From Lytechinus pictus (lineage: Eukaryota), in NCBI RefSeq assembly GCF_037042905.1, contig NC_087246.1, positions 35,836,001 to 35,900,000 on the forward strand: a DNA stretch of 64,000 bases, written 5' to 3'. Shown one piece after another: positions 5,049 through 61,388 of the stretch (position 1 is its first letter; the number at the start of each line of letters is the position of its first letter). A model generated the notes under the pieces. The model was not told the origin of the DNA and did no database searches. It saw only the letters and a list, made by a program, of their open reading frames with translations. Made by a program: the position numbers and the translations under genes.

Positions 5049-5992
5049 TAATATACTTTCCTTCTTTGTCTCTCTCTCTCTCTCTCTCTCTTTGTTCCAT
5101 TAATATCATATTTCATCTTTCTCTTTCCACGTATCTCTCTTTCTCTTATTTATGTCTGTCTGTCTCTATAACTCTCTCTCTCACCCCCACACACACACCA
5201 ACATAAATATAACACACCCACCTTTTGCATACTCATGCATTAGCTTTTCCACTCTTCATTTTGTATTATTTCAGCTCTTCATCGCGCACATCCACCTGAC
5301 TCACTGCCACCCCCTCTCTATACTGTATATTGGTTGTCTCTCAAATTATTTTTATTTCACCCCCTCTCTTTTAATCCTCCTAGTACCTCTTTCTTTCTTC
5401 GCCCCCTCTCTATCTTTCTCTCTCCCTAATTTCACAGGTACATGTACACATAACCACACACACACACCAGCTTTTTTATTTAGACTCTCTGTAGGATCTT
5501 TAGATGGCGAAGGAAATTCCCATTATCATTTCCTTACCTTGCACTATACTCTAACAGGATATATACAAAGAGGCACTTTACTATTATGGAACCCCTCCCC
5601 GGATAATTCCATTGTCCACTTGGAAGTTGTCTCACAATCCACCTCATTTACACAATTATCAATTAATTAAGTTTTCTTAAGTATATGTATTTCTTTCACT
5701 TTTCAACTTCCAATTACTTTTCTCCAACAATCCTACCAAAAGTAATCAAACTTATGAGAATGATTGAGACAAATTATAAGATTTTTCAATATTTGGTTAG
5801 AATTTTAATTTAAATATATTAGTGAATGGAAGAGATACAAACAAGCAACAAGCAGCATCTTAAAGTGTCATTTTATATAAGTCAATGAATGAATATTAAT
5901 GACATCAATCAAAAGTGATCTTCATACACATTGCAAAAAGGCAAAGGGAAGATGTGGTTCTGAGTTTCGACCCTTGACCTGCGATGACCGCC

Positions 5993-6860
5993 TCAGTCTG
6001 TTTCACTAGATTCAACGGATGACGATTCGGCAGAAACAGACGAAGAACGTCTGAAACGAGCTGCAAGTAACGAAAAGAAAAATGATAATGATTATTAACA
6101 TACGAAGAAACTCCTAAGATTAATCTGTATGCATATCAAATAAACATGAATATATTCTCTATATTCAAGGATAACATATATTTAGTTCGAAATACTTTAT
6201 ATCGGTTTGTGTTTTATAGTTTGGCAAAGGAGAAATCATAATAACCTAAATATTTTGTTTGATATGTGAATAAAGAAGACAAGAAAATTGTAAAAGAGAG
6301 AGAGAGAATTAAAATACTAATAATTATGATGGAAATTCTAATCAAAACTTTCAGTGAGTTCAACTATGATAAACGGAGAAGAGGAACAATCTATAAGATG
6401 ATCCTTTGCATGCGTGTCATAAATACATTTGGACGATATCACAAAGTGTCAACAAAAGTATTTTTAAAAATCTTTACATATGGCATTAGGAGATTTGAAG
6501 ATACTTACCTGTAGAGGAACAGTCGACAACTTCAAGGCAAATTTTTTCCAAGATTTCACAGGCATCAGCGCTATTCTGCTCTCCTTCCTCTACCAGACAC
6601 ACCATGTTATTCTCAGCTCCATCAAACAATTCCTGTTCAGTAAGAGTAAGAACTCCTCTTAGATCTTCTTCACACGTGTCAACCACCTGCCTGTATCTGT
6701 CACATAGGGCTTCGAACTGTGCAGTGCGATCGGTAGTTTGTGCTAAAAATAAAGGAAATTATCAAATCATGATTTTGCGTTGAATTTACCAGTAACACAA
6801 ATAAATAACCAGTGGAGATTTAAGCCAAAAAATTGAGGTGGCAAGGTATGGCGTATCGGG

Positions 6861-6909
<49 letters not shown>

Positions 6910-8085
6910 GTTTCGAGCGAGCGAAGCGAGAGAGCAAGTGTCGTCATTTTTATTTTCAAAATCCTATTTTGTGATAGATTTTGACATAATATTTAAAAAA
7001 TAATATATTTCATCCTTCTCTCTTTCTTTCCTTTTTCTCTTGTTCGTAAAAAAATTGAGGGTAGCAAGCGTCCCAAGAACCCCCCCCCCCCCCCGTCTGT
7101 ACGCCACTGTAACAAACCTATGATTTATATTGCAATAATGATCTGCACCATCATGATAAAACCAATATTATTGCACCAAAATGAACAAATTGACAAGTTT
7201 TGCTGTGTAATGTGGAAAAAAATTTAACATTTCCCAAACATAGATGTATCATATATAAAAGTGATTTCAAAATGATCATGATATATACCCAAATGAGAAA
7301 TATATCTGCAAATTTCGATAAATCCCTCTTTTTCTCTATTGATTTTTAAATGAAAAATTAAAAAATATATACCTTTGACTGCCATCGCAAAAACTGCAAC
7401 GAGACACAAACAAACGCAAAATGTTTTTACCTGTAGAAAGGAAAATAAATAAAATATTCAATTCATTTGTATACTCTAACATCATAGCTTTAAATGATAA
7501 CGTAAATATTCAAAGAATTAATTGAAATTTAGGTAAGACTGTCTTTTTGGAAACAACTTTGAGGATCTTTGCGGGTCAATTCCCTTGTTCATTAAAATTA
7601 GACTTTATTTCTTTACAAATAGATCTCGGAAGAGAAATAACACCCCCCCCCCAAAAAAAAAAAAAGGGAAAGGAATAAATAAATAAAATAAGTAATAAAA
7701 TAAAACAGGATGAAGAGTGATAATTAAATGGAATAAAAAAAGATATAACATAAAAAAATATAAAAATTGTAAAATTGAAGGAATTCAAAGATTATAAACC
7801 TAATGATTAAAATAAATGAAATTTAATAGCATATACCATTGGCGGACAAAAACATAAAGGTATACCCCGAATTGTGAGATCATAAAAAACCTCTGTTTTG
7901 GTATAATACAGATATCTATTTCTATTTTACTGTCAACATTTTCAGAAAGAATTCAAAATCCATGTTATCAAATTCATTCTTTTTTTCTTATTATATCCAG
8001 TTAAAACTAAATCAGGTTTACGCAGTTTAAACAGTATCTGCTGGAATAATTGGAAAAATAATATTGTACTTACCGATTGAGCCAT
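5993..8085 (-). CDS. Secreted six-Cys acidic protein precursor, copy 1 (subtype B), 123 aa, 4 coding exons
   Basis: complement join(8074..8085,7373..7430,6509..6742,5993..6060); GT-AG introns, phases 0/1/1; MAQSVKTFCVCLCLVAVFAMAVKA-QTTDRTAQFEALCDRYRQVVDTCEEDLRGVLTLTEQELFDGAENNMVCLVEEGEQNSADACEILEKICLEVVDCSSTARFRR-SSSVSAESSSVESSETD*. Confidence 0.92.
6810..7109. mobile_element. MITE with CAGTGG(CG) termini in intron 2, shared by subtypes A and B
   Basis: CAGTGGAGATT...GTACGCCACTG; counterparts near 11485, 15633, 24097, 39116 and 56911; partly deleted in copies 5, 7 and 8. Confidence 0.65.
6865..6906. repeat. (TA)n microsatellite in intron 2 of copy 1
   Basis: About 21 TA units; much shorter in paralogs. 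Confidence 0.95.
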
Positions 8086-10562
8086 TTCAGGAGTTTTGCT
8101 GAGTCAAGAGCTTTGAAAAAAAAGGTATTTCGAATGCTGATGGGTGAGTGATTAATGACTGTATTTTTCCCCTTTTATAGTATTTCAACATAATCAAAAT
8201 TTAGGTAGGAAATGTTTGTCTTTCACGATTGCGAGATTACAATATGATATGATAATTATGACAGTTTAAGATTTGAACAAAAGGACATATTGCGTAATTT
8301 GTTTGTGATAGGTAAAACTGTCATTACGAATTACGTTTCTAATTATATGCGTAATTAATATCTATACCATTAAGATGAAGTTGACAATTTGAAAGGTTAA
8401 AATAAAAAGAATAAACAAACAAAACGAGTGAACGACCAACTAATACGTTTGTAAAAGATCCAAGGACTGTATCTCTCTCTCTCTCTCTTTCTCTCTCCCT
8501 CAGTCTCACCTAAATGTAATTGACACGGTCTATTAATTATCTTGTTTCCTTTACCTTTGAAAGTAAACGAAACAATGAGAGTCATTTGCCGACAGATTTC
8601 TTGTTTGAATGTTTTATTTTGCTGTATAAAGCGAATTAGCTGGTGTTTTAGTCTATTATGAATCATTGTGAAGAAATGGGAATATACAAAGAGGTCTTAT
8701 GTCGTTAATTTTTTTTTAAGAATCAGTGATGATTTAACGGATGGTGTGTCAGAGCCACGGTTCAGACGACCTTATATTTTATTTCTTATATCGACGTCAA
8801 TTTTGTTACTTTTTATATGCATGTTCCTCATTAAAAAGCACCAGTACGATATCAATGCATAGTTTTATGAATAAAAGTCTATTTGATATAAATGATAAAA
8901 TCATACAGGATTCGAAAATGGACACATTTTACTGTTTCTACGAATTTATTAAGATCATGGAGTTTCACTAATCAAATTATTCGAGCGCGAAGCGTAAGCT
9001 GAAAATTTTTGACATTTTGAAATTTTGAAAGGACTGTCTTTAGGAATTAATCTTTATAAAAACAAAGGCGAGCACGAAGCGCGAGCTGAATTTTCTTTTA
9101 TATTCAGTCCTAAAAAGGGAACATTTTTAAGCACATAGTAATCATGAAAAAGATGCGTATGTAACTGAATGAAATAACGAGTTTGAAGCGCGAGGAGAAA
9201 CATTTGATATTAATTTGAAAACCGAATGTTTCAAGCGCCATTTAATCCCCTTGGAAGCGGAACATGATCAAATTTAACAGGCAATGCGTGCTCCGGGAGG
9301 AGTGGTGAACACATAGACCCCAAGCAAATTGTGTCTCATCAAATTCTGAAAAAAAAACTTATATTTCTTTTTTCCCGACCATAAATTTCTTTCTTTCCCG
9401 GTCTTTCTCTCCCTTTCCCACGTTTTTATTTTATTTTACTATATTCAATATTTTTTTTTTCCTTGTCGATTTTTTTTGGTCTTTTTTTTAATTTTTTTTA
9501 TTCATCTATTTTTTAGTGGGTGACACGTGCCACTCGTTACATCACTTATGGTACTAGATGTCACTTTTGACTGGGTTATGTACAAAATCTAGCTCTAATG
9601 ATAATGTAATGTATAATGCGTTTAGCAATTTGGATCTATCTTTGATCAATGCAATAACAAAAATATTCGAGTATACCCACTTGTTAACTTTTATATATTA
9701 AAGAAAAATCATATCAATGATCAGCTTATTTAATGGGTGAATTTCGCACTAACCAATATGACTTTTTAAATACATTTTCATATATTAGCGTGGAGTACTA
9801 GACTTGTTTATTTAATTATAATATTTCTCAATATTAAAAACACTAAGCAGTTGTTAAAAAATATTTGATGGAAAGTATTAGGTCCTATACAGTAGATCGA
9901 CCAACTACTCTAGAAGCCAATGACTGTCGGCTAATGCCAATCATAATTGTTTCATTTACTTTAAAAGGTAAATGAAACAAGACAATAGACCATGTCAAAC
10001 AAATTTAAGTGAGAGAGAGAGGGGGGTGAAAGAGAGAGAGAGAGAGAGAGAGGGGGGGAGAGACAGACAGAGACAGAAGGGAGATAGAGTAGGTCCTTGG
10101 CTCTAAACACAAGCGAATTAGTTGGTCGTTCACTCGTTTTATTAGTTTATTTTTAATATTTTACCTTTGAAACTGCCAACCTCATTTAAATAATATAAAT
10201 TAATTATACATGTAAATGGAAAACAAAATACATGATGTCAGTTTTACCTTTCACAAACAAATTACGTAAAATTCCCTTGGATTTCAACACAAAGAAAGGT
10301 ATTTATTGGTCGTTCACTCGTTTTGTTTGTTTATTCTCTTAATGTTGGCCTTTCAAACTGTCAACTTAATCTTAATTGGTACAGATATTAATTACGCAAA
10401 TAATTAGTAACAAAATTCGTAATGACAGTTTTACCTATCACAAACAAATTACGTAAAATGTCCTTTTGTTCTATTCTTACACTGTCGTATCATGTCATAA
10501 TCCAATCTCGCTTTCTTGAAAGCCAAACATTTCCAACCTAAATTTTGATTACTTTCAAATAC

Positions 10563-10569
10563 TATAAAA
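10563..10569 (+). promoter_or_regulatory. TATA box of copy 2; equivalents occur at all complete copies
   Basis: aatacTATAAAAggg about 90-100 nt upstream of the ATG in copies 1,2,4,5,6,7,8,9, followed 20-30 nt later by initiator-like TCATT/TCACT. Confidence 0.8.
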
Positions 10570-10661
10570 GGGAGAAAATATCTTCATTAATCACTCATTC
10601 ATCAGCGTTCTAAATAACACTTTATTTTCTCAAAACGCTCGGCTCAGCAAAACTCCTGAAA

Positions 10662-12507
10662 ATGGCTCAATCGGTAAGTAGAACATTACTTTGAAAAATT
10701 ATTCCAGCAGAAACAATTAAAACTGCAAACAGTTATAGTTTTAGATTTTAAGGCATTTTAAAGAGATATTGAAAGAAAAAAGAGCAAATTTGATGACATG
10801 GATTTTAATTTATTTGTGAATTTGTTTGTATACGTAAATAGAAATCTGCATTATACACCGAATGTTTATCTTGGATATCACAAGTCGGGGTATATCGTTT
10901 TGTTTCAGTCCCCCGATCCGCCAATGGTATATGCTATTAAATTCCTTTATATTAAGCATTAGGATTATAAACTTTATATTTATTGATTTTTTACAATTTT
11001 TATATTTTTTTTCATGCTATATCAATTTCATTCCATTTAATTATCACTCTTATTCCTGTTTAGTTTTTTTCCAATTTCAATTAATTCTTAAAATGTTCAT
11101 GTTATTATTTAAACTATTCTTTTAGAGTATACAAATGATTTTTTTTTTCTTCAATTTTTCCCTTTTACAGGTAAAAGCACTTTGCGTTTGTTTGTGTATC
11201 GTTGCATTTTTTGCGATGGGAGTGAAAGGTATGGATTTTTTTGTATATTTTTCAATTAAAAATTGATAGAGAAAAAGAGGCATTTATCGAAATTTGCAGA
11301 TATCTTTCTCATTTGGGTGCTGTTTCTATCGTGACTTTCATCATGCATGATACATCTATTTTGAGGAATGACATAAAACTTTTGATATTGTTAGGACAGC
11401 GAGTTTCCACATTACACAACAAAACATGTCAATTTGTTTATTTAGGTGCAATAATGTTTTTTTAATTGGGATATATGATTGTTACAGTGGCGTACAGGGG
11501 GGGGGGGGGTCTTGAGCACTTGCCCCCAAATAATCAAGACCAAGAAAATAAAGAGAAAAGGAAATAATTAAAGGGAAAGAGAGGAGGGTAAAATAAATTA
11601 TTTTCTGAATATTATCTCAAAATTTATGCTCGCTTGCTTCGCTCTCTCTAAGCTTTTTTAAAAACAAATTTTCCCGATACCCCATATCTTGCCCCCTCAA
11701 AACGTTTGGCTCAATATGCCACTAGTTTGTTATGTGTTTTACAGAAAAACTTTATGAAAAGTCACGATTTGATAATTTATTTCATTTCTAGCCCAAACTA
11801 CCGATCGCACTGCACAGTTCGAAGCCCTATGTGACAGATACAGGCTGGTGGTTGACACGTGTGAAGAAGACCTAAGAGGACTTCTTACATCTACTGAACA
11901 GTCCCTGTTCGATGAAGCTGAGAATGATATGGTGTGTCTGGTAGAGGAAGGAGAGCAGAATAGGGCTGAGGCCTGTGAAATCTTAGGAAAAATTTGCCTT
12001 GAAGTTGTTGACTGTTCCTCTACAGGTAAGTAATATCTCCAAATCCCCCAATGCATTTTATAAAGATTTTTTGCTGCTTTTTGTTGACACTATCGTCCAA
12101 AAATATTTATGATATGTAATCCAAAAGATCCCTCTTCCTATATTAGATTGTTGCTCTTCTCGGTTTATCATAGTTAAACTCAATGACATTTTCAAGTGTT
12201 TTAATTCTCTTTACACAATTTCTGGTCTTCATTATTCACATTTCAAACAAACGTAAGTCGTTATCATAACCTCTCCCTTTTCCAAAAGATAAAAACAAAC
12301 CGATATACAATATTTCAAATAAATTATCGTTAAATATCCATGTTTACATGATATGCATTCCGATTAATCATTGGAGTTTCTTCGTATGTAAATAATGCTT
12401 GCAATTATATTTCATTACTTGCAGCTCGTTTTAGACGTTCTTCGTCTGTCTCTGCCGAATCGTCATCCGTTGAATCTAGTGAAACAGAATCTAGTGAAAC
12501 AGACTGA
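10662..12507 (+). CDS. Secreted six-Cys acidic protein precursor, copy 2 (subtype A), 128 aa
   Basis: join(10662..10673,11171..11228,11792..12025,12425..12507); MAQSVKALCVCLCIVAFFAMGVKA-QTTDRTAQFEALCDRYRLVVDTCEEDLRGLLTSTEQSLFDEAENDMVCLVEEGEQNRAEACEILGKICLEVVDCSSTARFRR-SSSVSAESSSVESSETESSETD*; TATAAAA at 10563, AATAAA at 12668. Confidence 0.93.
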
Positions 12508-13267
12508 GGAGGTCATCGCAGGCCAACGGTTGAAACACAGTATCCCATATTTGCCTCGAGTGTCGTAATGTGTATGAAGATCACTTCTTCATTCGACTTT
12601 TATATAAGTAACTATTTAAGATGCTGCTTGTTTCTTTTTATGTGTCTTCCATTCACTAATATATTTAAATAAAATTCTAACCAAATATTGAAAAATCTAA
12701 TAATTTGCCTCAGTTATTCATAATTTTGATTATTTTTGGTAGGATTGTTGGAGAAAGGTAATTGGAAGTTTAAAATTTGAAAAAAAAATACGTGAGTAAA
12801 CATAATTCATTGAGAGAAAATAATGAAAAAAATATTGTGTAAATAAGGTTGATTATGAGACCCCTTCCACGTGAACTAGGGGAGATACCAGGGGGTTCCA
12901 TATAAATATGCTCCTTATATCATGTTGGAGAATAGTGCAAGAAATGAAATGATAATGGGAATATCTTTCGACACCTAGAGTCAAGATGCTAGAGAGCCTA
13001 GATAAAAAGACAGTGTATGTGGGTGCGTGCACCTGTGTATAAGGGTGAGAGAGAGAGAGGGGGGAGAGGTACATGAGAATTAAAAGAGGGGGATGAAATA
13101 TAAATAATTTGAGAGACAACTTATATAATTATAGAGTAAGGGGGTGGTAGTGAGTCAGGTATATGTGCGAGAGAGAGAGAGCTGAAATAATACAGAACGA
13201 AGAGTGAAAAACCAATACATGAGTTTGCAATAGGTGGTGTGTACTATTTGTTTTTGAGAGTGTGTAC

Positions 13268-13450: not shown

Positions 13451-14054
13451 TGTGTGTGTTGAATGTATTGTTCTCCCCCTTGTTAAAGATAAAGGATTCA
13501 TCTCATTAAACCCAAATATAAGATTATAATCTTCGTATAATTTGTAAATTTCTAGCTACAAAATGGTACAGGTAACCTTAATTCAGCTTTCATTTTCTAG
13601 ATTTTTTTTTTATCCTGCAATTTGGGGTTATGAATAATTATGTTGCTCACTGTATACATTTAGTTTAAATTCACCCCGAAACAAAGCCTTGCTTTGGGAC
13701 ACCATTAGAGCTTATCACGAAAGAAGTGACACCATCATGCTAGACAAACTGTGCTCTCTTGCTCCGATTATTCCTGAACCAGCCAAAATGGCAACCCACA
13801 AGTTTGATATTAACAGTAATGGAATAATAGAATAAGTAATAGTATCGAAAATTCCATGCAGATTGTCATGAAATTTTCGGTGTCATGCTTCTTTAATTTT
13901 TCTCTCTTTCTTGGAATTAACTTGTTGTAGAGTGGACATGTACCATGAGCTCACTCAAGACTAGTGGCAACTGCGGTTTATGAACCAAAAATATACGCTT
14001 TTCACACTGCGTTTCCTTAACCCCATACTATCCTTTACCACGGACTATCCTTAA

Positions 14055-14664
14055 AGGACAAGTCCACCCAAACAAAAGGTTGATTTGAATGAAAAGAAAA
14101 AAATCCAAAAAGAATAACACTGAAAATTTCACCAAAATCGGATGTAAAATAAGAAAGTTATGGCATTTCAAAGTTTCGCTTAATTTCACAAAACAATTAT
14201 ATGCACATCCTGGTCGGTATGCAAATGAGGAGACTGATGACATCATCCACTCACTATTTCTTTTGTATTTTATAATATGAAATATGAAATATTCTAATGT
14301 TCTCCTCAATGTCAAGTGAAACAACGATTAATTCCTCCCTGAACATGTAGATTTAGCATTGTTTAATACTATATGATTTAGTCAACTTGGTCCTTATGAT
14401 CAAATCTGTAAAAAATGAAATATTGTATAATTCACACAATTAAAAACAAAAGAAATAGTGAGTGATGGACATCATCGACTGAGTGACTGACTCACTTGCA
14501 TGACACTGAGTTGTGCATATCACTGTTTTGTGAAAAATAAGCGAGACTTTACAATGCCATAACTTTCTTATTTTATATCCGATTTTGATGAAATTTTCGG
14601 CTAATGCTAGTTTGATTTGTCTCTATTTATTCAGATCAACATTTTTATGAGGTGGACTTGACCT
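14055..14664. mobile_element. Non-autonomous DNA transposon with TTAA target duplication (Kolobok-like AGG termini)
   Basis: TTAA|AGGACAAGTCCACC...GGTGGACTTGACCT|TTAA with long inverted arms; empty site ccTTAAcc near 18873. Confidence 0.9.
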
Positions 14665-15318
14665 TTAACCTCATACTTTCTTTTTATTTTTATTCACACT
14701 GTCTTTCGTAACCCCATGCTATTTACTTAGCCGGGGTTAACGCCTTAACCCCGGACCATCGCACAGCCTATGAATATTGATGATTTTGCCACACAGAGCG
14801 TGATTAACCTGCAATTTCGACTTCTGTTATTGGCTAATGCTTAGCCCCACATTTCCTTAGCCTGGTTTCGTTCATACTGCATCTCTTAGCACCGCAATAA
14901 GCCGGCTAACCCTGCTTTTTGCAGGACCAGATAGTACCATACTATTTACCGTACTAGCCCACTTTGCTAAAACCAAGGTAGGTCCATGCTAATACGTAGT
15001 GTGAAACCGAAGTAGGCTAAGTGCTAAGTTTAACCACGGGAAATTGATGGGCTATGACCAATCCACCAATGGTATATGCTATTAAATTCCATTCATATTA
15101 AGCATTATGATTATAAACTTTATATTTATTGATTTTTTACAATTTTTTTATTTTTTTCATGCTATATCAATTTCATTCCATTTAATTATCACTCTTATTC
15201 CTGTTTTGTGTTTTTCCAATTTCAATTAATTCTTAAAATGTTCATGTTATTACTTAAACTATTCTTTTAGAGTATACAAATGAATTTATTTTTATTCTTC
15301 AATTTTTCCCTTTCACAG

Positions 15319-16641
15319 GTAAAAGCACTCTGCGTTTGTTTGTGTATCGTTGCATTTTTTGCATTGGGATTAAAAGGTATGGATTTTTTAGTATATTTTT
15401 CAATTAAAAATTGATAGAGAAAAAGAGGCATTTATCGAAATTTGCAAATATATTTCTCATTTGGGTACTGTTTCTATCGTGACTTTCATCATGCATGATA
15501 CATCTATTTTGAGGAATGACATAAAACTTTTGATATTGTTAGGACAGCGAGTTTCCACATTACACAACAAAACATGTCAATTTGTTTATTTAGGTGCAAT
15601 AATGTTTGTTTAATTGGGATATATGATTGTTACAGTGGCGTACAGGGGGGGTCTTGGGGCACTTGCCCCCAAATAATCAAGACCAAGAAAATAAAAAGAG
15701 AAAAGGAAATAATTAAAGGGAAAGAGAGGAGGGTAAAATATATTATTTTCTGAATATTATCTCAAAATTTATGCTCGCTTGCTTCGCTCTCTCTAAGCTT
15801 TTTTAAAAACAAATTTTCCCGATACCCCATATCTTGCCCCCTCAAAACGTTTGGCTCAATATGCCACTAGTTTGTTATGTGTTTTACAAAAAAACTTTAC
15901 GAAAAGTCACGATTTGATAATTTCTTTCATTTCTAGCCCAAACTACCGATCGCACTGCACAGTTCGAAGCCCTATGTGACAGATACAGGCTGGTGGTTGA
16001 CACGTGTGAAGAAGACCTAAGAGGACTTCTTACATCTACTGAACAGAACCTGTTCGATGAAGCTGAGAATGATATGGTGTGTCTGCTAGAGGAAGGAGAG
16101 CAGAATAGCGCTGATGCCTGTGAAATCTTGGAAAAAATTTGCCTTGAAGTTGTCGACTGTTCCTATACAGGTAAGTAATATCTTCAAATCCCCTAATGCC
16201 ATTTATAAAGATTTTTGCTGCTTTCGTTGACACTCTGTGACATCGTCCAAAAATATTTATGATATGTTATGCAAAAGATCCCTCTTCCTATATTCGATTG
16301 CTGCTCTTCTCAGTTTATCATAGCTAAACTCAATGACATTTTCAAGTGTTTTAATTCTCTTACACAATTTCTGGTCTTCATTATTCACATTTCAAACAAA
16401 CGTAAGTCGTTATCATAATCTCCCCCTTTCCCAAAAGATAAAAACAAACCGATATACAATATTTCAAAGATATTATCGTTAAATATCCACGTTTACATGA
16501 TATGCATTCCGATTAATCATTGGAGTTTCTTCGTATGTTAATAATGATTGCAATTATATTTCATTACTTGCAGCTCGTTTTAGACGTTCTTCGTCTGTCT
16601 CTGCCGAATCGTCATCCGTTGAATCTAGTGAAACAGACTGA
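15319..16641 (+). pseudogene. Copy 3 (subtype A): exons 2-4 intact, exon 1 and promoter deleted
   Basis: Exons 15319..15376, 15937..16170 and 16574..16641 are open with good splice sites. Homology to intron 1 begins abruptly near 15061, directly after MITE sequence, with no ATGGCTCAATCG exon or TATA upstream. Confidence 0.85.
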
Positions 16642-17255
16642 GGAGGTCATCGCAGGCCAAAGGTTGAAACACAGTATCCCATATTTGCCTCGAGTGTCGT
16701 AATGTGTATGAAGATCACTTCTTCATTGGACTTTTATATAAGTAACTATTTAAGATGCTGCTTGTTTCTTTTTATGTGTCTTCCATTCACTAATATATTT
16801 AAATAAAATTCTAACCAAATATTGAAAAATCTAATAATTTGCCTCAGTTATTCATAATTTTGATTATTTTTGGTAGGATTGTTGGAGAAAGGTAATTGGA
16901 AGTTGAAAATTTGAAAAAAAAATACGTGAGTAAACATAATTCATTGAGAGAAAAAAATTGTGTAAATAAGGTTGATTGTGAGACCCCTTCCACGTGAACT
17001 AGGGGAGATACCAGGGGGTTCCATATAAAGAATGCTCCTTATATCATGTTGGTGTATAGTTCAAGAAAGGAAATGATAATGGGAATATCTTTCGACACCT
17101 AGAGTCAAGATGCTAGAGAGTCTAGATAAAAAGACAATGTATGTGGGTGCGTGCTCCTGCGTATAAGGGTGAGAGAGAGAGAGAGGGGAGAGAGGTACAT
17201 GAGAATTAAAAGAGAGGGATGAAATATAAATAATTCGAGAGACAAGCTATATATT

Positions 17256-19706: not shown

Positions 19707-19820
19707 TAAGGCCCACATTTCCTTAGCCTGGTTTCGTTCATAGCACTGCAATTGTGGTGCTAGCACCGCAATAAGCCGGCTAACCCTGCTTTTTGCAGGA
19801 CCAGATAGTACCGTACTATT

Positions 19821-21570
19821 AGGTGAGCGGCCAGAAGCGAAAAAGGGGCTTATTTCTTGACTTTAATCCCCCCGGCTGGATCAAAGCAAAATCATACATC
19901 AAATTAAAGGAAATTTTCTGAATTTTTCGGAATTGGGCATTAAAACTGACGTAATGTGTAGCATCACCATGGAAACCAGCCTTGATTAAGCCACGCCCAT
20001 TTTAAATACTTATTGAATATTTATAGTAAATATTGTTTTTTACACATTAATTTAAATTATCAGGTATTTTTTCTTATTTTTATAGGATAGTTCCACTATA
20101 TATTGTAAGAAGAATTACAGAATAACAACTTAGCATGAATTTTATGAACATTTTCTCAGAAACTGTTGCCTAGCAACATAACTTTCCTTAGCAACCATTT
20201 AGCTCCTTAAGTAAACCACTTATTTTTCCATTTCAAACCTAACTTTTAACTTTTTAACTAGGTTAGATTAAACCTAATAAGTTATACCAATGAAATTCTA
20301 TAAAGTATTATTGAAAAATAATAAAAAGAACTGAAAAACCCCATTTTAACTATTGCGAACCTCAAATAAATTTGCTAAGCTCTACTTAACATTCCCCTTC
20401 ACATCGTACAAATCGCGCCATTATTGTTCATTTTGACTACATTGATACACGTACGTACAAGTCACATACTTTGTACTATTTTGTGGTGAAAAAAGTGGAT
20501 TGAGTTAATAATACTTGATCAATTAACATGCAGTATCTTGTCTTCAATAGAACAACAACAAAATTACCATTTCACATTACCCATGGATACCAATTCATTG
20601 CCTAGCAACGACTATTTTCCATTGCAACGACTATGATAACACTCTCCTCCCTGGACAAATCTGTGTAAAAAATAGTTCATTATGAGCAATAATACTGACA
20701 CAATATCATATAGATGCCTACAACCTCGTTTTCAATATTCATTCAACAAACTGACTATTTTTTAGCTTCCATGGAGACAAATGTGTTGCCTAGTAACAAT
20801 ATTCCCTAGCAACGGCTATGTTACCACTCTTCATCTCAGTCAAATGTGCTGAAGAAGTTGTGCCTTAGAGTAAAAATATTGAGAAAATTAACATATGATA
20901 GTTTGTCAAACAGTATTCAGTAATTTACCATCATCTACTGACATAATTCCATTGCCTAGCAACACTATTTACCTTAGCAACGATGTATTTTCCCCTTAAA
21001 CAATCTTGAGGAAAAATAATCCACTTTTAAGTGTACAGTACCATTTGTAAAAGGATGGTCCAAGCTGTAAATATTTCTATCTAAATAAATAGAGTAAAAT
21101 TCACAAAGCTAAATGCTGAAAATGTCATCAAAATCGGATAACAAATAACAAAGTTATTGAATTTTACTCAATTTATTTAGATAGAAATATCTCCAGCCTG
21201 GACCATCCCTTTAAATAATATGCCTTCATGCATACTGGCAATGGCAAATTAAAGGACACTACTTCATTTCTCTCAATTCTAAAAAAAAAATCATTTATCC
21301 TTGTTTGTATATTGCTTGTCTACAAATTCTTAACAGTCCGATGAGCATGGTATTTAAACTTAATCATATATAAAGAGCAGCTACAAAGAGAAATTTTAAT
21401 GTTGAAGATATAAACAGATTAATATGGTTTGGAGGATTAATAGCTGGGTACATAACATATTTTTAGCTTTTGGCTGCATATTCAGATCAATTTCCTCAAG
21501 TGAATATGGAATGGTTAACAAATGGATGTGTCTTGTCAAATAATACCTAGTCACCCATGCAAGTCCAACT
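19821..21570. mobile_element. 1.75-kb unclassified insertion rich in TTGCCTAGCAAC motifs, with a nested TTAA MITE (about 21051..21210)
   Basis: Interrupts ccgtactatt|..ccgtactagc of the host MITE; duplicated at about 47254..49010. Confidence 0.6.
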
Positions 21571-23317
21571 TCCGTACTAGCTCACTTTGCTAAAACCAAG
21601 GTAGGTCCATGCTTATACGTAGTGTGAAACCGAAGTAGGCTAAGTTTAACAACGGGAAATTGATGGGCTATGACCCCCCCCCCCCCCTTAGCCCTACCAT
21701 TTTCCCAAGTTTAAGGAAAATGTGTGAAAAGCATAATTATTATAAAGAGGTGAAATCGGTTTAGATGGATTTGCAATAGAAAAGAAATATCAACTCTTGT
21801 AGGTGATCGATCTAAAAACACGATCGTATTTTTTTTGTAAAGAAAATTAAAAAAATGAAATTGCCTATTGAAGAAAAAATGGCAAAATTAATATGACAAA
21901 GTATTTCAAAAGAGAGCAATATCAAAGCAAATAGTAGTTCCTTACTGTTGCTTCATTTGCCACAGGTATTACTGAATGTCATTTGACGTATTTTGGATAA
22001 TATTGAAAAATAATGACGATCCAGAGACCATATAGACCGGATTACATCTTTTATATTTACTTATGTTCTGATTTACACGAAGAATCGTATGTCTGTTCTT
22101 TCTCCCCTCCCTTGTACTTTTTCTAATGCTCTCTCTCTCTCCCCTCTCTTTTTCTCTCTATCTCTTCGTTCCATTTATATCATCTTTTATCTTGCTCTTT
22201 CCACGTATCTCTCTCTTATTCCCGACTGCCTATCTCTATTACTCTCTCTCTCTCACACACACACACACACCCACACACCCTCAAACACAAATAGAACGCA
22301 CCCACCTATCGCATAATCATGCATTAGCTTTTCACTCTTCCTTGTGTATTATTTCAGCTCTTCATCGCGCACATAACTGCCATATAATTATATGCCATTA
22401 TATAGGTTGTCTCTCAAATTATTTATATTTTATCCCTCTCTTTTAAAGGAAACCAAAACCAAGATGAGAAGCAATCTTATTGGAAAGAGTAAAAGAAGAG
22501 GAACAATTTTAATACGTTTCCGTTTTTTGTGGACAATTCTCCATTTGTTTTGTACACATTTTTTTTCAGATTTTCCCTATTATCTTCAAAATTGCATGTT
22601 GCCTCATTCTAAGCATAACATATGTCATGGGAAAATATAATTCACACCACATATTGATCAAGGTCAGCAGGAGCTGAAGTGGAATATGTATAATAAAGGG
22701 GAAAATCTGAAAAAGAGGTACATGATGTACCTCTTTCTTCCCTCTTCTCCCTTTCTCACACATATACACACGCGCCACCCTTATACACATGTGCACACAC
22801 CCACACACACTGTCTTTTTATCTAGGCTCTCTAGCATCTTGACTCTAGCTGGCGAAAGAAATTCCCAGTATCATTTCCTTTCTTTGCACTATTCTCCAAC
22901 AGGATATAAGGAGCATTTTTATATGGAACCCCCTGATAACTCCCCTAGTTCACGTGGAAGGGGTCTCACAATCAACCTTATTTACAAAATAATCTTCTTC
23001 TTTTTTTATTTTTTCTATCAATGAATTATGTTTACTCACGTATTTTTTTCCACTTTTCAACTTCCAATTACCTTTCTCCCACAATCCAAATAATCAAACT
23101 TATGAGAATGACTGAGGCAAATTATTAGATTTTTCAATATTTTGTTAGAATTTTATTTAAATATATATAAGTGAATGGAAGTGACATAAAAAAGAAACAA
23201 GCAGCATCTTAAAATGTTATTTATACAAAAGTCAAATGAAAAAAATATTGTTGTACACATAAGACTCAAGGCAAAGATGGGGTACTGTGTTTCGACCTTT
23301 GACCACCAATGACCTCC

Positions 23318-25356
23318 TCAGTCTGTTTCACTTGATTCAACGGATGACGATTCGGCAGAGACAGACGAAGAACGTCTGAAACGAGCTGCAAGTAACGAAA
23401 TATAATTACATTCATTATTAACATACGAAGAAACTCGTATGATTAATCGGAATACATATCATGCAAATATTGATATTTACGGATTATTTCTAATTACTTT
23501 GAAATATCATAGATGGTTTTTTTGGAAAATGGAGAGATTATGATAACTTTCGTTTGTTTTATTATGTGGATAATGAAGACCAGAAATTGCATAAAGAGAA
23601 TGAAAACCTAGATTTTCATTACAACTTTCATTGAGTTTAACTATGAAAAACTGAGAAGAGGAACAATCTAATATAAGAAGAGGGATACTTTGCATTACAT
23701 AAATAAATAAATGTTTTGGACGATATCACAAAGTGTCAACAAAAGTATTTAAAAAAATCTTTATATATGGCATTAGGAGATTTGAAGATACTTACCTGTA
23801 GAGGAACAGTCGACAACTTGAAGGCAAATTTTTTCCAAGATTTCACAGGCATCAGCGCTATTCTGCTCTCCTTCCTCTACCAGACACACCATATTATTCT
23901 CAGCTCCATCAAACAATTCCTGTTCAGTAAGAGTAAGAAGTCCTCTTAGGTCTTCTTCACACGTGTCAACCACCTGCCTGTATCTGTCACATAGGGCTTT
24001 GAACTGTGCAGTGCGATCGGTAGTTTGTGCTAAAAATGAAGGAATTTATAAAATCATGATTTTTCGTTGAATTTACCAGTAACACAAATAAATAACCAGT
24101 GGAGATTTAAGCCAAAAAATTGAGGTGGCAAAATATGGCGTATCGGGAATTTTTTTTTATATATATAAAAGTTTCGAGCGAGCGAAGCCATGGAAGCGAG
24201 AGAGCAAAAGTGTCGTCATTTTTATTTTCAAAATCCTATTTTGTGATAGATTTTGACATAATATTAAGAAAATAATATATTTCATCCTTCTCTCTTTCTT
24301 TCCTTTCCTTTTTGTCTTGTTCGTAAAAAATTGAGGGTGCCAAGCGCCCCCAATACCCCCCCCCGTCTGTACGCCACTGTAACAAACCTATGATTTATAT
24401 TGTGCAATAATGATCTGCGTCATCATGATAAATCCAAAATTATTGCACCAAAATGAACAATTTGACAAGTTTTGTTGTGTAATGTGGAAAAAATATTAAC
24501 ATCCCCCAAACATACATGTATCATATATAAAAGCGATTTCAAAATGATCATGATATATACCCAAATGAGAAATATATCTGCAAATTTCGATAAATCCCTC
24601 TTTTTCTCTATTGATTTTTAAATGAAAAATTAAAAAAAATATATACCTTTGACTGCCATCGCAAAAACTGCAACGAGACACAAACAAACGCAGAATGTTT
24701 TTACCTGTAGAAAGGAAAATAAATAAAATATTCAATTCATTTGTATACTCTAACATCATAGCTTTAAATGATAACGTAAATAATCAAAGAATTAATTGAA
24801 ATTTAGGTAAGACTGTCTTTTTGGAAACAACTTTAAGGATCTTTTCGGGTCAATTCCCTTGTTCATTAAAATTAGACTTTATTTCTTTACAAATAGATCT
24901 CGGAAGAAAAATAACACCCCCCCCCCAAAAAAAAAAAAGGAAAGGAATAAATAAATAAAATAAGTAATAAAATAAAACAGGATGAAGAGTGATAATTAAA
25001 TGGAATAAAAAAGATATAACATAAAAAAATAAAAAAATTGTAAAATTGAAGGAATTCAAAGATTATAAACCTAATGATTAAAATAAATGGAATTTAATAG
25101 CATATACCATTGGCGGACAAAACCATAAAGGTATACCCCGAATTGTGAGATCATAAAAAACCTCTGTTTTGGTATAATACAGATATCTATTTCTATTTTA
25201 CTGTCAACATTTTCAGAAAGAATTCAAAATCCATGTCATCAAATTCATTCTTTTTTTCTTATTATATCCAGTTAAAACTAAATCAGGTTTACGCAGTTTA
25301 AACAGTTTCTGCTGGAATAATTGGAAAAATAATATTGTACTTACCGATTGAGCCAT
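23318..25356 (-). CDS. Secreted six-Cys acidic protein precursor, copy 4 (subtype B), 123 aa
   Basis: complement join(25345..25356,24647..24704,23796..24029,23318..23385); intact frame; variants QFKAL and ICLQVVDC. Confidence 0.92.
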
Positions 25357-25737
25357 TTCAGGAGTTTTGCTGAGTCAAGAGCTTTGAAAAAAAGGTATTT
25401 CGAATGCTGATGGGTGAGTGATTAATGACTGTATTTTTCCCCTTTTATAGTATTTCAACATAATCAAAATTTAGGTAGGAAATGTTTGTCTTTCACGATT
25501 GCGAGATTACAATATGATATGATAATTATGACAGTTTAAGATTTGAACAAAAGGACATTTTGCGTAATTTGTTTGTGATAGGTTAAACTGTCATTACGAA
25601 TTTCGCTTCTAATTATATGCATAATGAATATCTATACCAATAAGAGGAAGTTGACAATTTGAAAGGTTAAAATAAAAAGAATAAACAAACAAAACGAGTG
25701 AACGACCAACTAATACGTTTGTATTGAGATCCAAGGA

Positions 25738-25774
<37 letters not shown>

Positions 25775-27834
25775 GGTCTCACCTAAATATGATTGACACG
25801 GTCTCTTAATTATCTTGTTTCATTTAGCTCTGAAAGTAAATGAAACAATCAGAGTCATTTGGCTACCGATCGCTTGTTTTCGTTTGAAAATACAGCGAAT
25901 TAACTGGTGTTCTTCTTCTTCTTCTTCTTCTCTATAAGTACAGGCCACCGTCTGGCGTATTGTCGTACTGTATTGTCGTTCTAGTCTACTATGAATCATT
26001 GTGAAGAAATGGGAATATACAAAGAGGTCTTATGTCGTTCAATTTTTTAAAGAATCAATGATGATTTAACGGATGGTGTGTCAGAGCTACGGTTCAGATG
26101 ACCTTGTTCTTTTATTTCTTATATCAACGTCAATTATTTTACTTTTTATATGTATGTTCCTCCTTATAAAGCACCAGTATGATAAATGAATATCAATGCA
26201 TAGTGTTATGAATAAAAGTCTATTTGATATAAATGATAAAATTATACAGGATTCGAAAAGGGACACATTTTAAGGACTGTTTCTATGAATTCATGAAGAT
26301 CATGGTGTTTCACTAATCAAATTATTCAAGCGCGAAATGTAAGCTGAAATCTTTTGACATTTTTGACATTTTGAAAGAACTATCTTTAAGAATTAATCTT
26401 TATAAAAACAAAGACGAGCACGAAGCGCGAGCTGAATTTTTCTTTTATATTCAGTCCTAAAAAGGGAACATTTTTAAGCACTTAGTAATCATGAAAAAGA
26501 TGCGTATGTCACTGAATAAAACAACGAGTTTGAAGCGCGAGGAGAAACATTTGATATTAATTTCAAAACGGAATGTTTTAAGCGCCATTTAATCCCCTTG
26601 GAAGGGGATCGTGTATCAAATTTAACAGGCAAAGCGTGCCCCGGGAGGAGTGGGGAACACATAGGCCCCAAGCAAATTGTGTCTCATCAAATTCTGAAAA
26701 AAACATATATTTCCTTTTTCCCGACTATAATTCCCTTTCTTTCCCGGTCTTTCTCTCCTTTCCCCCGTTTTTATTTTATTTTACTTTATTCAATTTGTTT
26801 ATGCTTGTCGATTTCTTTTATCTTTTATTTTATTTATTTAATTTTTTTATTTATTTTTTTCTTTTTTTTTTGGGGGGGGGGCACGTGCCACTCGTTACAT
26901 CACTGATGGTACTAGATGTCACTTTTGACTGGATTATTCACAAAATCTAGCTCTAAGGATAGTGCAATGTATAATGCTTTTAGCAGTTTTTGATCTGTCT
27001 TTCATCAATGCAATAACAAAAATAATCCAGTATACCCATTTGTTAACTTTTATGTATTAAAGAAAAAAAATCATATCAATGATCAGCCTATCTAATGGAT
27101 GAAATTTGCAGTAACCAATAAAACTTTTTAAAATACATATTCATATATTTTCGTGGACTATTTGTAAATCTAATTGTAATATTCCTCAATATTAAACACA
27201 CTAAGCATTTGTTGAAAAATATTTGATGGGAAGAATTAGGTTCTATAGATCGACCAACTACTCTAGAAGCCAATGACTGTCGGCTAATGCCAATCATAAT
27301 TGTTTCATTTACTTTAAAAGGTAAATGAAACATGACAATAGACCATGTCAATCAAATTTAAGTGAGAGAGATAGAGGTTGTGGGTGTGTGTGTGTGTGTG
27401 TGTGAGACACAGAGAGAGAGAGAGAGTAAGAGACAGAGACAGAGGGGAGAGAGAGTGAGTCCTTGGTTCTAAACACAAATGCATTAGTTGGTCGTTCACT
27501 CGTTGTATTAGTTTATTTTCAATTTTTGATCTTTGAAACTGCCAACCTCATTTAAATAATATAAATTAATTATGCATATAATTAGAAAACAAAATACATG
27601 ATGACAGTTTTACCTTTCACAAACAAATTACGTAAATGTCCCTTTGTTCTCTAACTGTCATATCATGTCATATTCCAATCTCGCAATCTTGAAAGCCAAA
27701 CATTTCCAACCTAAGTTTTGATTATTTTCAAATACTATAAAAGGGAGAAAATATCTTCATTAATCACTCATTCAACAGCATTCGAAATAACTCTTTATTT
27801 TCTCAAAACGTTCAGCTCAGCAAAACTCCTGAAA

Positions 27835-30800
27835 ATGGCTCAATCGGTAAGTATAACATTACTTTTTAAAATTATTCCAGCAGAAAAAAAATTAAGACTG
27901 CAAAACAGTTATAGTTAGCTTTTAAGGCATTCTAAAGATATATTGAGAAGAAAAAAAATTTGATGACATGGATTTCAATTTATTTGTAAATTTGTTTATA
28001 TACGTAAATAGAAATCTGCATTATACAACGAATATTTATATTGGATCTTACAATTCGGGGTATATCTCTTTGTTTTATTCCCCCGATCCGCCAATGGTGT
28101 ATATATGCTATCAAATTCCATTTATATTAAGCATTAGGATTATAAAATTTATTTTTATTCATTTTTTACAATTTTTATATTCTTTTCATGCTATTTTTGT
28201 CATATCTATTTAATTATCACTCCTATTCCTTTTTTGATTTTCAAATTTCAATCAATTCTTAAAATGTTCATGTTATCATTTAAACTATGATTTAAGAGTT
28301 TACAAATGAATTCGTTTTTTTTCCCCTTTTACAGGTAAAAACACTCTGCGTTTGTCTATGTCTCATTGCATTTTTTGCAATGGGAGTGAAAGGTATGGAT
28401 ATTTGTATTTTTTCAATTAAAAATGTATAGAGAAAAAGAGGCATTTATCGAAGTTTGCCGATATCTTTGTCACTATACTGCTTCTATCGTGACTTTCATC
28501 ATGTTTGATACTTCTATTTTGGAGGGATGACATATAACTTTTCATTAAAAAAAGAGAAAATGAAAGAAAGGGAAAGAGAGGAAGGTGAAATATGATATTA
28601 TTTTTTTAATATTATGTCAATTTTTTGGCTAGCTTGCTTCGCTCGCTCGAAACTTCTTTAATTTTTTTTCCCGATGCACCATATCTTGCCCCTCAAAACG
28701 TTTGGCTAAATATGCCACTAGTTTGTTATGTGTTTTAGTGATAAATTCTACGGAAAGTCACGATTTGATAATTTCTTTCATTTCTAGCCCAAACTACCGA
28801 TCGCACTGCACAGTTCGAAGCCCTATGTGACAGATACAGGCTGGTGGTTGACACGTGTGAAGAAGACCTAAGAGGACTTCTTACATCTACTGAACAAAAC
28901 CTGTTCGATGAAGCTGAGAATAGTATGGTGTGTCTGCTAGAGGAAGGAGAGCAGAATAGCGCTCATGCCTGTGAAATCTTGGAAAAAATTTGCCTTGAAG
29001 CTGTCGACTGTTCCTCTACAGGTAAGTAATATCTCCAAATCCCCCAATGCATTTTATAAAGATTTTTTGCTGCTTTTTGTTGACACTATCGTCCAAAAAT
29101 ATTTATGATATGTAATCCAAAAGATCCCTCTTCCTATATTAGATTGTTGCTCTTCTCATTTTATCATAGTTAAACTCAATGGCCCGTATTCTGATAGCAG
29201 GTTTAACTTAACCCTAGTCTAAAGTTAACCCTGGTTTAACTAAACCTCCTCTAAACCTCACCTCTGGTCTAAGTGTAGTTTAATTATTTTGGTATTCTGA
29301 TAGCCAGGTTTAACTAAACCTGGGTTAAACCCGGGTTTAAATTCTTTTTGGAAATAATAATCCTCTTTTAACCAAGACTAGCACCTTTTTGGTAAATTAG
29401 TGCTGCAGGGATGACTGCAACAAAGTTGAAAAAATGTCACTAAAGTTGTTTTTTCTTAAAAATTTGGATTTTATGGAAACTAATTACAACTATTGTAGTG
29501 AAAGAAAAGCATTCATCACCCATATATGGTAAGAAATTTTCATTCAGATTATCTTTATATTTTTTAATTACTAAAACATTTCAATCCCAAACCGAGTGAC
29601 CTGCATAGTTTTGTGTGTATCAGTCCCATTGATTGCTTTTCATGTTTGTCAAAATCTAAATTGAATAGATTTACCTCACCCACTCTAGACTAGAGTCTAG
29701 ACTCTAGTCCTATAGATCTAAAACAATAAGTTAAGAGGTCGACATCTTTATTCTAACTTTATGTAAGGGGAAATTTTTGTAACTTTTGAGAGTAGTCTTG
29801 GGTCTAACATTAGGCCTAGGCTAGTATAGTTAGATCTAGCTTAGGCCCAATTGTTTGGAGGAGAATTGAACATTGTTTTGACTTTTTTTACTTTCCTGAA
29901 GCAAACCGTAGTCTAGTGGAGCAACCGAGACTGAAGCTACATTATACATATTTATAGTATTGGTCTAGGCCTAGAACATCATTCAGGAATTAGGCTGGCT
30001 TAGCCTTGGGACAGGGATAGATATAGATCTATATTCTAACCTTATTCTTAGTTAGATTTGGAATCTAGTAGAATAGATCTGATTTGTCTTAGACAAAAAG
30101 CTTCAGTCTCTGTATTGTTCCGCTGAGTCTATGATGAGTATGACAGTCTACGTTGCCGTTGGCCTCTCTCACCAAGGCAATGTGATATGACAATAAAATG
30201 TCAGAATTTTTTCAATAAATCCCCAGAAACGACGGTTATTCCTGTCTACAGTGTTAGATCTGACTATCGCTATGCATTGCCATTGCTTGCCAAGTAACTA
30301 GGCCTGGCTAAATGACATCTCTCTACTCCTGTTTTAGGTCCATATCTGTTTCTTTGAAGAGTTTTTATTTTATTTAAATATTTTTGGGGACTTGTTTAGG
30401 TTTCCAGGTCCAGGACTAAAAAACAGGCCTAAACCTAGACCAACAACAGCTTAGTCTTGACTAGACTAGGCCAGGCCTAGATTTATGTAAGAATTTAGAT
30501 CTAGGCCTTACGTTAGTCTGTGCTATCTAGTCTACTGACTTACTGTATGATCTAGAATCTCTAACGCTGGCCTAGTTCTAGACTAAATAACTTAGACCCT
30601 ATCTAGATCTAGAACTAGATCTGTATCAATCTAGGTCTACATGTAATAGGTCTAGATCTAGAGATTTGTAGACTCTCAATTTAGATTCTAAATCGAAAAA
30701 TAGTAAATGTAGGCTAGTCTACAGTAGATCTACTCATCTAACCTTAGGCATGACAAAAGAAGTAGGCTAGAGATCTAACGGATTATTACTAGATCTAAAG

Positions 30801-34229: not shown

Positions 34230-34408
34230 TATTATAGAGTGAGGGGTGGCAGTGAGTCAGGTGGGGGTGCGCGATGAAGAGATGAAATAATACAAAAGGA
34301 AGAGTGGAAAAGCTTATACATGAGTATGCAATAGGTGGGTGTCTTCTATTTGTTTTTCAGTGTGTGTGTGTGTGTGTGTGTAAAATGTATTCTTCTCTCC
34401 CTTGTTAA

Positions 34409-45086: not shown

Positions 45087-45253
45087 TATTATAGAGTGAG
45101 GGGGTGGCAGTGAGTCAGGTGGGTGTGCGCCATGAATAGCTAAAATAATACAAAAGGAAGAGTGGAAAGCTAATGCATGAGTATGCAATATGTATGTGTT
45201 CTATTTGTTTTTCAGTGTGTGTGTGTAAAATGTATTCTTCTCCCCCTTGATAA

Positions 45254-49676: not shown

Positions 49677-49721
<45 letters not shown>

Positions 49722-53109: not shown

Positions 53110-53141
<32 letters not shown>

Positions 53142-61220: not shown

Positions 61221-61388
61221 TTAACATGGGGGAGAAGAATACATTTTACACACACACACCAACACAAATAGAACACACCCACCTATTGCATACTCATGCA
61301 TTAGCTTTTCCACTCTTCCTTTTGTATTATTTCAGCTATTCATCGCGCACACCCACCTGACTCACTGCCACCCCCTCACTCTATAATA

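Follow-up and report, generated by a model that had tools for sequence, protein, structure and literature searches.

The stretch of DNA analysed here, hereafter the window, comprises 64,000 nucleotides of the sea urchin Lytechinus pictus (NC_087246.1, positions 35,836,001 to 35,900,000; coordinates count from its first letter unless another sequence is named). It is AT-rich (GC ~33%) and contains a family of small paralogous genes, among them the head-to-head pair c1 (B type) and c2 (A type) at positions 5993 to 12507, which is the subject of this analysis and appears to be the unit of a local amplification. A six-frame motif search identified nine copies of the core exon in the window, five on the plus strand and four on the minus strand, the latter all carrying TLTEQELFDG or TSTEQNLFDE. 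Alignment of the nine copies yielded four-exon gene models with GT-AG borders throughout, in which exon 1 consists of ATGGCTCAATCG (MAQS) and lies ~100 bp downstream of a conserved TATA box, exon 2 (58 nt) supplies a hydrophobic leader, exon 3 (234 nt) a six-cysteine acidic core, and the exon 4 product is A-RFRR-SSSVSAESSSVESSETD. The gene structure is independently supported, because the models of c8, c9 and the downstream neighbour c10 match NCBI proteins letter for letter (XP_054772717.2, XP_054772709.2 and the LOC129280709 product, respectively). The current NCBI model at the c2 locus has 109 aa and starts at a Met inside exon 2. The first pair and its flanks are laid out as follows.

5189 to 5992, minus strand: c1 3' flank, inverted-homologous to the c2 3' flank (12508-13265); outer end of the old inverted duplication.

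5993 to 8085, minus strand: c1, B type, 123 aa, GT-AG model, stop codon ending at 5993; exons 1 to 4 at 8074-8085 (MAQS), 7373-7430 (signal-peptide core), 6509-6742 (six-cysteine acidic core) and 5993-6060 (A-RFRR-SSSVSAESSSVESSETD plus stop).

8086 to 8595, minus strand: c1 promoter arm, with TATA box ACTATAAAAG at 8172-8181 and TC microsatellite at 8472-8501; inverted-homologous to the c2 arm.

8596 to 9923, no strand: central spacer of ~1.3 kb, not palindromic; found in head-to-head pairs only (B/A and A/IV, both Lytechinus species), not at solo genes.

9924 to 10661, plus strand: c2 promoter arm, with TATA box at 10561-10570 and GA microsatellite at 10011-10089.

10122 to 10459, plus strand: tandem duplication in the c2 promoter (187 bp x1.8), a proximal promoter module.

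10662 to 12507, plus strand: c2, A type, 128 aa, GT-AG model, stop codon ending at 12507; exons 1 to 4 at 10662-10673, 11171-11228, 11792-12025 and 12425-12507.

The predicted precursors (123-128 aa) consist of a signal peptide, the six-cysteine acidic core, an RFRR site and a Ser/Glu tail. Features of secreted proproteins (a hydrophobic N-terminal leader, an R-x-R-R site and S-x-E motifs) are present family-wide; secretion, dibasic (furin-type) cleavage and phosphorylation of the tail are predictions from these motifs, and the family is best described as uncharacterised, small, putatively secreted acidic proproteins. Three species share a nearly invariant tail (RFRRSSSVSAES..SVESSETD) and a nearly invariant N-terminus of the core, and in 18 aligned proteins from these species RFRR and SSSVSAES..SVESSETD are invariant or nearly so, with RYRR in one Strongylocentrotus purpuratus subtype. 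The tail of c2 is longer by 5 aa through a 15-nt tandem duplication at 12472-12503. More generally, the length of the exon 4 tail varies in frame, with +ESSET in c2, c5 and c7 (the 15-nt duplication) and +SSM in c6 and c10.

A sequence-only reading of this DNA had described pairs 1/2, 4/5, 6/7 and 8/9 as divergent, with 2.1-3.2 kb between ATGs and with the proximal 400-500 bp on each side homologous in inverted orientation. Both descriptions agree with our measurements. The ATGs lie at 8085(-)/10662(+), 25356(-)/27835(+), 40350(-)/42458(+) and 52690(-)/55938(+), giving distances of 2577, 2479, 2108 and 3248 bp, respectively. Pair 8/9 is the mirror of the other three, with its A-type gene on the minus strand and its B-type gene on the plus strand. 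Self-comparison of the intergenic regions recovered inverted arms at the ATGs of all four pairs, with E values from 1e-81 to 1e-105: 365 versus 366 bp at 85.2% identity in c1/c2 (E 2e-105), 413 versus 405 bp at 80.9% in c4/c5, 408 versus 411 bp at 80.6% in c6/c7, and 380 versus 384 bp at 80.7% in c8/c9. In every pair this homology is broken by a TC/GA microsatellite and then continues to ~490-540 bp; GA/GT runs occur at the equivalent position in all copies. On the c2 side the homology reaches 738 bp, because the 187-bp promoter module is duplicated there. Several diagnostic positions in the downstream copy of this duplication look B-like, a sign that the two arms may have exchanged sequence. 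The inverted homology extends over whole genes and ~0.8 kb of 3' flank (5189-6861 versus 13265-11672, 76.5% over 1735 bp).

The same reading had proposed that the amplified unit is a head-to-head B/A pair derived from an older inverted duplication, to be checked by a self dot-plot and a gene tree of all copies. In the dot plot and in BLAST chains, the B gene, spacer, A gene and inter-unit segment recur collinearly in units 1 to 3, with a period of ~15-17 kb, and recur inverted in unit 4. Identity along the whole-unit alignment is 84-99%; the spacers are 84-93% identical between units, and an inter-unit segment (47142-50800 versus 19709-23351) is 96.5% identical. In the whole 812-Mb genome assembly the core exon has 13 matches, all inside one 90-kb cluster of 13 genes (L. 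pictus C2:35.82-35.91 Mb), and two NCBI annotation releases contain ~15 loci of the family. The four genes outside the window are m2(-) and c0(-) upstream and c10(-)/c11(+) downstream, the latter a further head-to-head pair with 2559 bp between ATGs.

Trees of the promoter, of intron 1, and of exon 2 plus intron 2 each split the B copies (c0, c1, c4, c6, c9) from the A copies (c2, c3, c5, c7, c8, c10) with 95-100% support, as the proposal predicted; the tree of exon 3 alone separates A from B more weakly. To place the copies relative to Lytechinus variegatus, for which NCBI lists six relatives, the 47-kb locus CM031016.1:63240423-63287770 was recovered and its six genes were modelled, in the order Lv1(-), Lv2(-)/Lv3(+), Lv4(+), Lv5(-)/Lv6(+). 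In a concatenated tree of the 5' module (promoter, intron 1 and exon 2/intron 2; 1807 columns), the five B copies of L. pictus cluster together (support 100/99) with Lv2 as their sister (100/100), Lv3, Lv4 and Lv5 fall with the L. pictus A genes in an A clade (100/100), and m2 with Lv1 and c11 with Lv6 are recovered as orthologs (100/100 each). The A-B path between c1 and c2 is ~0.29; orthologs of the two Lytechinus species are 0.12-0.145 apart, and B copies no more than 0.10. This path exceeds both the ortholog and the within-B distances, and Lv2 is sister to the L. pictus B genes; hence the A/B split predates the amplification.

The paired layout is itself shared between the two species. The ATGs of Lv2/Lv3 are 2449 bp apart and those of Lv5/Lv6 2561 bp apart. 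Along its entire length the c1/c2 spacer matches that of Lv2/Lv3 in the same order (84.8% over 2004 bp, with the proximal arm in addition), and it aligns collinearly but inverted with those of c10/c11 and Lv5/Lv6. Solo genes share homology with it only up to ~670-720 bp upstream of the ATGs, and therefore the central ~1.2 kb is pair-specific. Together, the spacer collinearity and the trees suggest that the head-to-head pair arose once and was mirror-duplicated before the Lytechinus split. The trees further indicate that only the B/A version was amplified, and only in L. pictus, as all five B copies are sister to Lv2. With the A and B clades, the Lv2/Lv3 pair and the collinearity of the units, the proposal of a head-to-head B/A pair as the amplified unit holds. 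In S. purpuratus (AAGJ06000002.1:31.29-31.41 Mb) there are at least 8 copies on one strand, 6.2-8.2 kb apart, every one with a TATA box of its own; none of the eight visible copies, all in same-strand tandem, is arranged in a head-to-head pair. Several S. purpuratus copies encode identical proteins. A BLAST search with the promoter against S. purpuratus returned microsatellite matches only.

The remaining copies in the window are arranged as follows.

15319 to 16641, plus strand: c3, A type, a 5'-truncated duplicate of c2 that starts in intron 1 (15058 corresponds to 10913).

23318 to 32942, both strands: unit 2, with c4 (B type, minus, ATG 25356, stop 23318) and c5 (A type, plus, ATG 27835, stop 32942).

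38319 to 44081, both strands: unit 3, with c6 (B type, minus, ATG 40350) and c7 (A type, plus, ATG 42458).

50767 to 57866, both strands: unit 4, mirrored, with c8 (minus, ATG 52690) and c9 (B type, plus, ATG 55938); its spacer is of the inverted B/A type.

The duplicate segment that holds c3 (15058-17254) is 94.5% identical to c2 and is unpaired. The reading frame of c3 looks intact; the copy lacks both promoter and exon 1, its exon 2 has Leu in place of the in-frame Met, and c3 is probably a pseudogene. None of the NCBI proteins among the listed cluster members corresponds to it. Upstream of the window, c0 is a solo B-type gene, and the 5.7 kb upstream of it are 95.5% identical to the segment upstream of m2. 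Intron 3 of c0 is 6.0 kb long; that of c5 (29022-32859) measures 3.8 kb, by insertion, versus the usual ~0.4 kb. Each inter-unit segment contains one fold-back element of ~610 bp that is ~74% identical to its own reverse complement (14051-14668, 34405-35015, 45251-45859 and 60615-61224), and one more copy lies ~19 kb upstream of the window. An A-type 3' untranslated region (UTR) in minus orientation at 61768-62364 is 95.5% identical to that of c2 and ends 17 nt from the expected stop codon. It is probably the 3' UTR of c10, split from c10 exon 4 (~66.9 kb in window coordinates) by a ~4.5-kb insertion. The part of this insertion within the window (62365-64000) holds an open frame of 296 aa (63080-63970, minus strand).

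The subtype residues had also been described as kept across units, with YRQ and TLTEQELFDG as marks of B and TSTEQ[S/N]LFDE as the mark of A. For the copies in the window this stands, as c1, c4, c6 and c9 all carry YRQ and TLTEQELFDG and c2, c3, c5, c7 and c8 all carry TSTEQ[S/N]LFDE. YRQ is not B-specific, however: it also occurs in m2 and c11, where it is combined with a TSTEQ/TSTEH-LFDE block, and in each of the six L. variegatus genes, whether or not they carry the B block. The A and B genes of L. pictus show eight consistent codon differences in exon 3, three of them synonymous and five replacements (Q42 to L/E, L57S, E61 to N/S, G65E, N69 to D/S). All of these differences lie within codons 42-69, mostly between Cys2 and Cys3. 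In exon 3 the A-versus-B pN/pS is 0.44 and pS is 0.14, clearly lower than the divergence of the non-coding sequence around it, a pattern compatible with purifying selection and a degree of homogenisation.

In L. variegatus the B block, synonymous changes included, sits on Lv6, a gene whose introns and flanks belong to lineage IV, and the B-lineage ortholog Lv2 carries an A-type block. The occurrence of the B block on lineage IV in L. variegatus implies that the block predates the species split and was moved by gene conversion. Lv2 and Lv5 differ at a single site in exon 3, with introns from different lineages; together with the B block on Lv6, this near-identity points to clear exon-level gene conversion in the L. 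variegatus cluster. The Cys2-Cys3 segment is also where the two S. purpuratus subtypes diverge most, the one observation that hints at a functional meaning of the two forms.

A 300-bp sliding comparison of identity along the unit demonstrates that the units are mosaics with swapped 3' modules. For example, the 5' half of c1 is 97-98.7% identical to c4 and c9, and its 3' end drops to ~80-84% identity with them and is nearer to Lv2 (84-90%). The 5' module of c2 is 97-98.5% identical to c10 and 86-92% identical to c5, c7 and c8, with the boundary of the c10/c2 similarity near 10200, ~100-200 bp beyond the GA microsatellite. The 3' modules form three groups, {c0, c1, Lv2}, {Lv5, c4, c6, c8, c9} and {Lv3, Lv4, c2, c3, c5, c7, c10}; those of c4, c6, c8 and c9 thus come from another lineage (Lv5 type), and c8 joins such a module to an A-type 5' part. 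Co-duplication of partners would be expected to give congruent A and B trees, and the partner trees are incongruent, with approximately unbiased (AU) test p values of 1e-44 when the A partners of c1, c4 and c9 are forced together and 6e-32 for the B partners of c5, c7 and c8; it should be noted that the groups for these tests were chosen after the trees had been seen. Later conversion and exchange would explain this mismatch.

Comparison of the copies and of the two species gives the following probable history. A single gene with at least 0.5 kb of upstream and 0.8 kb of downstream sequence was duplicated in inverted orientation. The resulting pair was itself mirror-duplicated before the split of L. 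pictus and L. variegatus, giving B(-)/A(+) and a second pair of an A-type gene with a lineage IV gene, A-star(-)/IV(+). In L. pictus only, the interval consisting of B, spacer, A and inter-unit segment (~15-17 kb) was then amplified to four units, presumably by unequal crossing-over between the same-strand genes B and A-star (the Lv5 ortholog), duplicating the interval between them, followed by gene conversion between copies. Such a crossover would account for the A-star (Lv5-type) 3' module of the later B copies c4, c6 and c9 and for the original module of c1. Two inversions by homologous recombination could then have produced the mirrored unit c8/c9 and the c2-like c10. Recombination of an A gene with the convergent A-star would come first, giving c10 its A-type 3' end and turning the inter-unit segment round; a second event, with the two Lv5-type 3' modules, by then inverted, as its substrates, would have flipped the core of unit 4. 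The spacers fit this two-inversion scheme, as the c8/c9 spacer falls, in both halves, among the inverted B/A spacers, and the central c10/c11 spacer with Lv5/Lv6. Two simpler accounts of unit 4 were rejected. That c8 is an unaltered, in-place ortholog of Lv5 is ruled out by the two halves of the c8/c9 spacer, which are of the inverted B/A and not the Lv5/Lv6 type, and a single within-unit inversion is ruled out by the 3' module of c9, which is of Lv5 type and not A type and is followed by the inverted inter-unit segment.

The sequence-only reading had gone on to suggest that the two genes of a pair are co-regulated from a shared intergenic region and that their products may act together. Each gene has its own TATA box ~100 bp upstream of the ATG and its own promoter arm of ~400 bp, and the TATA boxes within pairs are ~1.9-3.0 kb apart. 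Judged by ATGs and TATA boxes, this is not the arrangement of a bidirectional promoter, in which starts lie less than ~1 kb apart in one shared promoter region. Between L. pictus and L. variegatus, identity is 90-94% in the proximal promoter (94% at 8100-8399), 87-89% in introns and 83-89% in the central spacer. These values fit two duplicated promoters, and the spacer gives no sign of a constrained shared element. Hence co-regulation from a shared intergenic region finds no support in the sequence evidence. The duplicated promoters by themselves would give A and B similar expression, with no need for a shared element or an obligatory pairing of the proteins.

We consider it probable that the whole arrangement arose through the duplication history proposed above, with duplicated promoters giving A and B similar regulation; pairing would then most likely be a by-product of that history. 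Several points weigh against this reading. Promoter function, transcription starts and co-regulation are all deduced from the letters of the sequence, and the recombination events are ordered by an argument from parsimony. Branching in the A clade, which includes Lv3, Lv4 and Lv5, collapses to a polytomy, and within this clade the c2/c10 and c5/c7/c8 sub-lineages are ~0.17 apart, more than the ortholog distances; the A partners may therefore not all derive from one partner gene. The by-product view also leaves unexplained why the B block is kept in both Lytechinus species, and the two-subtype pattern in the same segment of S. purpuratus hints that the two forms matter functionally. In addition, one or more of the near-identical units could be a haplotype that was assembled in tandem.

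A functional interpretation takes the pair to be a module whose shared 2-3 kb region co-regulates A and B, whose products cooperate as a heterodimer or a two-component secreted factor, and which was copied as a unit to preserve dosage balance. It would agree with the conservation of pair and spacer between the two Lytechinus species, with the retention of an A partner by four of the five L. pictus B genes, and with the clustering of the five fixed A/B residues (Q42, L57, E61, G65, N69) around the Cys2-Cys3 segment, four of them inside it, a segment that also separates the S. purpuratus subtypes; the B block is also retained in L. variegatus, on another gene. We nevertheless regard this interpretation as unlikely, given that each gene has a TATA box and promoter arm of its own, that the central spacer is conserved no better than introns, that m2, c0, Lv1 and Lv4 are solo genes, that the eight S. 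purpuratus copies seen are same-strand tandem only, that the second ancient pair is A/IV and not A/B, and that the A-versus-B pN/pS of exon 3 gives no sign of divergent positive selection. A related view, to which we assign a similarly small probability, holds that two mature forms (TLTEQELFDG-AENN and TSTEQNLFDE-AEND) have been kept across species while conversion moves the block, constituting a functional two-form system (a heterodimer or two ligand specificities) with the pair as its dosage-balanced unit. Less probable still is that part of the amplification is an assembly artefact, with divergent haplotypes placed in tandem and a lower true haploid copy number. Sea urchins are highly heterozygous, and the 97-99% identity of some modules between units is within their allelic divergence; the 5.7-kb segments upstream of m2 and c0, at 95.5% identity, could be read in the same way. 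However, the units differ structurally (the extra c3 of unit 1, the 3.8-kb intron insertion of unit 2, the mirrored unit 4 and the distinct 3' module of c1), their spacers are only 84-93% identical, four units exceed two haplotypes, ~15 family loci appear in both annotation releases, and the independent L. variegatus assembly has the same pair architecture. We retain the duplication history, with pairing as its by-product, as the preferred reading.

Searches for relatives outside the cluster were consistent with a family confined to sea urchins. No credible Pfam family was found for the L. pictus proteins. The S. purpuratus homologues carry the automatic UniProt name Syntaxin-5 N-terminal domain and match PF11416 with 18.3 bits (cut-off 16.6) over 12 residues after the signal peptide; the L. 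pictus proteins have no match to this profile. We reject the identification as a chance motif, since it covers 12 residues behind a signal peptide and does not lie at a cytosolic N-terminus, and the name given to the S. purpuratus copies is apparently an artefact of annotation. When 1.8 billion representatives were searched exhaustively without a profile, the only matches were the urchin relatives (the S. purpuratus cluster), one 100-aa sequence from Logan/ENA assemblies with the same cysteine pattern, and one repeat protein that was discarded as spurious. A search of the ESM Atlas gave no usable match. As the homology searches return uncharacterised urchin proteins only, the family is apparently urchin-restricted. 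Literature searches by locus identifiers, protein accessions and peptide strings found no papers on it. An AlphaFold2 monomer prediction from an 18-sequence alignment had a mean pLDDT of 42, and a predicted complex of B core with A core scored 0.02, with controls that did not fold, a value that carries no weight for or against a dimer.

The cluster offers a well-resolved case in which an inverted gene pair became, in the space of a few million years, the raw material of tandem amplification, of exchange between modules and of inversion, and in which a two-species comparison dates each step. It also documents a group of uncharacterised, apparently urchin-restricted and putatively secreted proproteins in which the tail hardly varies between Lytechinus and Strongylocentrotus. 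For annotation and expression work in L. pictus, the mosaic nature of the copies means that paralogue-specific reads need to be assigned module by module, and that c3 is without a start. General principles are unchanged, and we regard the locus as ordinary gene-cluster evolution that happens to be well documented here.

The closest described organisation is that of the Sp185/333 (SpTransformer) clusters of S. purpuratus, in which small genes lie in microsatellite-bounded duplications of gene plus flank and for which gene conversion or unequal recombination has been proposed as the driver (Miller et al. 2010, PMC3091723). Both are urchin multigene families that occupy a few tens of kb and have conserved 5' and 3' flanks bounded by microsatellites; here GA/TC microsatellites end each promoter arm, and one switch of affinity (c10/c2, near 10200) adjoins one. 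The proteins are unrelated, Sp185/333 genes having two exons and Gly-rich, His-rich products without cysteine, whereas the present genes have four exons and encode acidic products with six cysteines and an RFRR-plus-Ser/Glu tail. Microsatellite-bounded flanks are thus shared with Sp185/333, but neither a homologous protein nor a two-exon gene is. The duplicated unit also differs, being a single 4.5-kb gene in Sp185/333 and a head-to-head pair of ~15-17 kb here. The coding sequence of the present family appears to be under purifying selection, and its likeness to Sp185/333 is one of organisation.

Units of the histone H2A-H2B type are head-to-head partner genes repeated in tandem, with a short bidirectional promoter and proven protein partners. 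The present cluster resembles them in its head-to-head layout and in the tandem repetition of the whole pair, and departs from them in having ATGs 2.1-3.2 kb apart, two mirrored TATA promoters and, as members, near-identical paralogues that are not known to interact. A further comparison is with the neighbouring pair c10/c11, which has the same family, four-exon structure and head-to-head layout, with a spacer homologous in mirror orientation. This is the other ancient pair, A-star(-)/IV(+), a positional ortholog of Lv5/Lv6 that was not amplified and whose A-type member now has a c2-like gene body. Every process invoked is of a known kind: duplication in inverted orientation, unequal exchange that amplifies in tandem, gene conversion, and inversion by way of inverted repeats.

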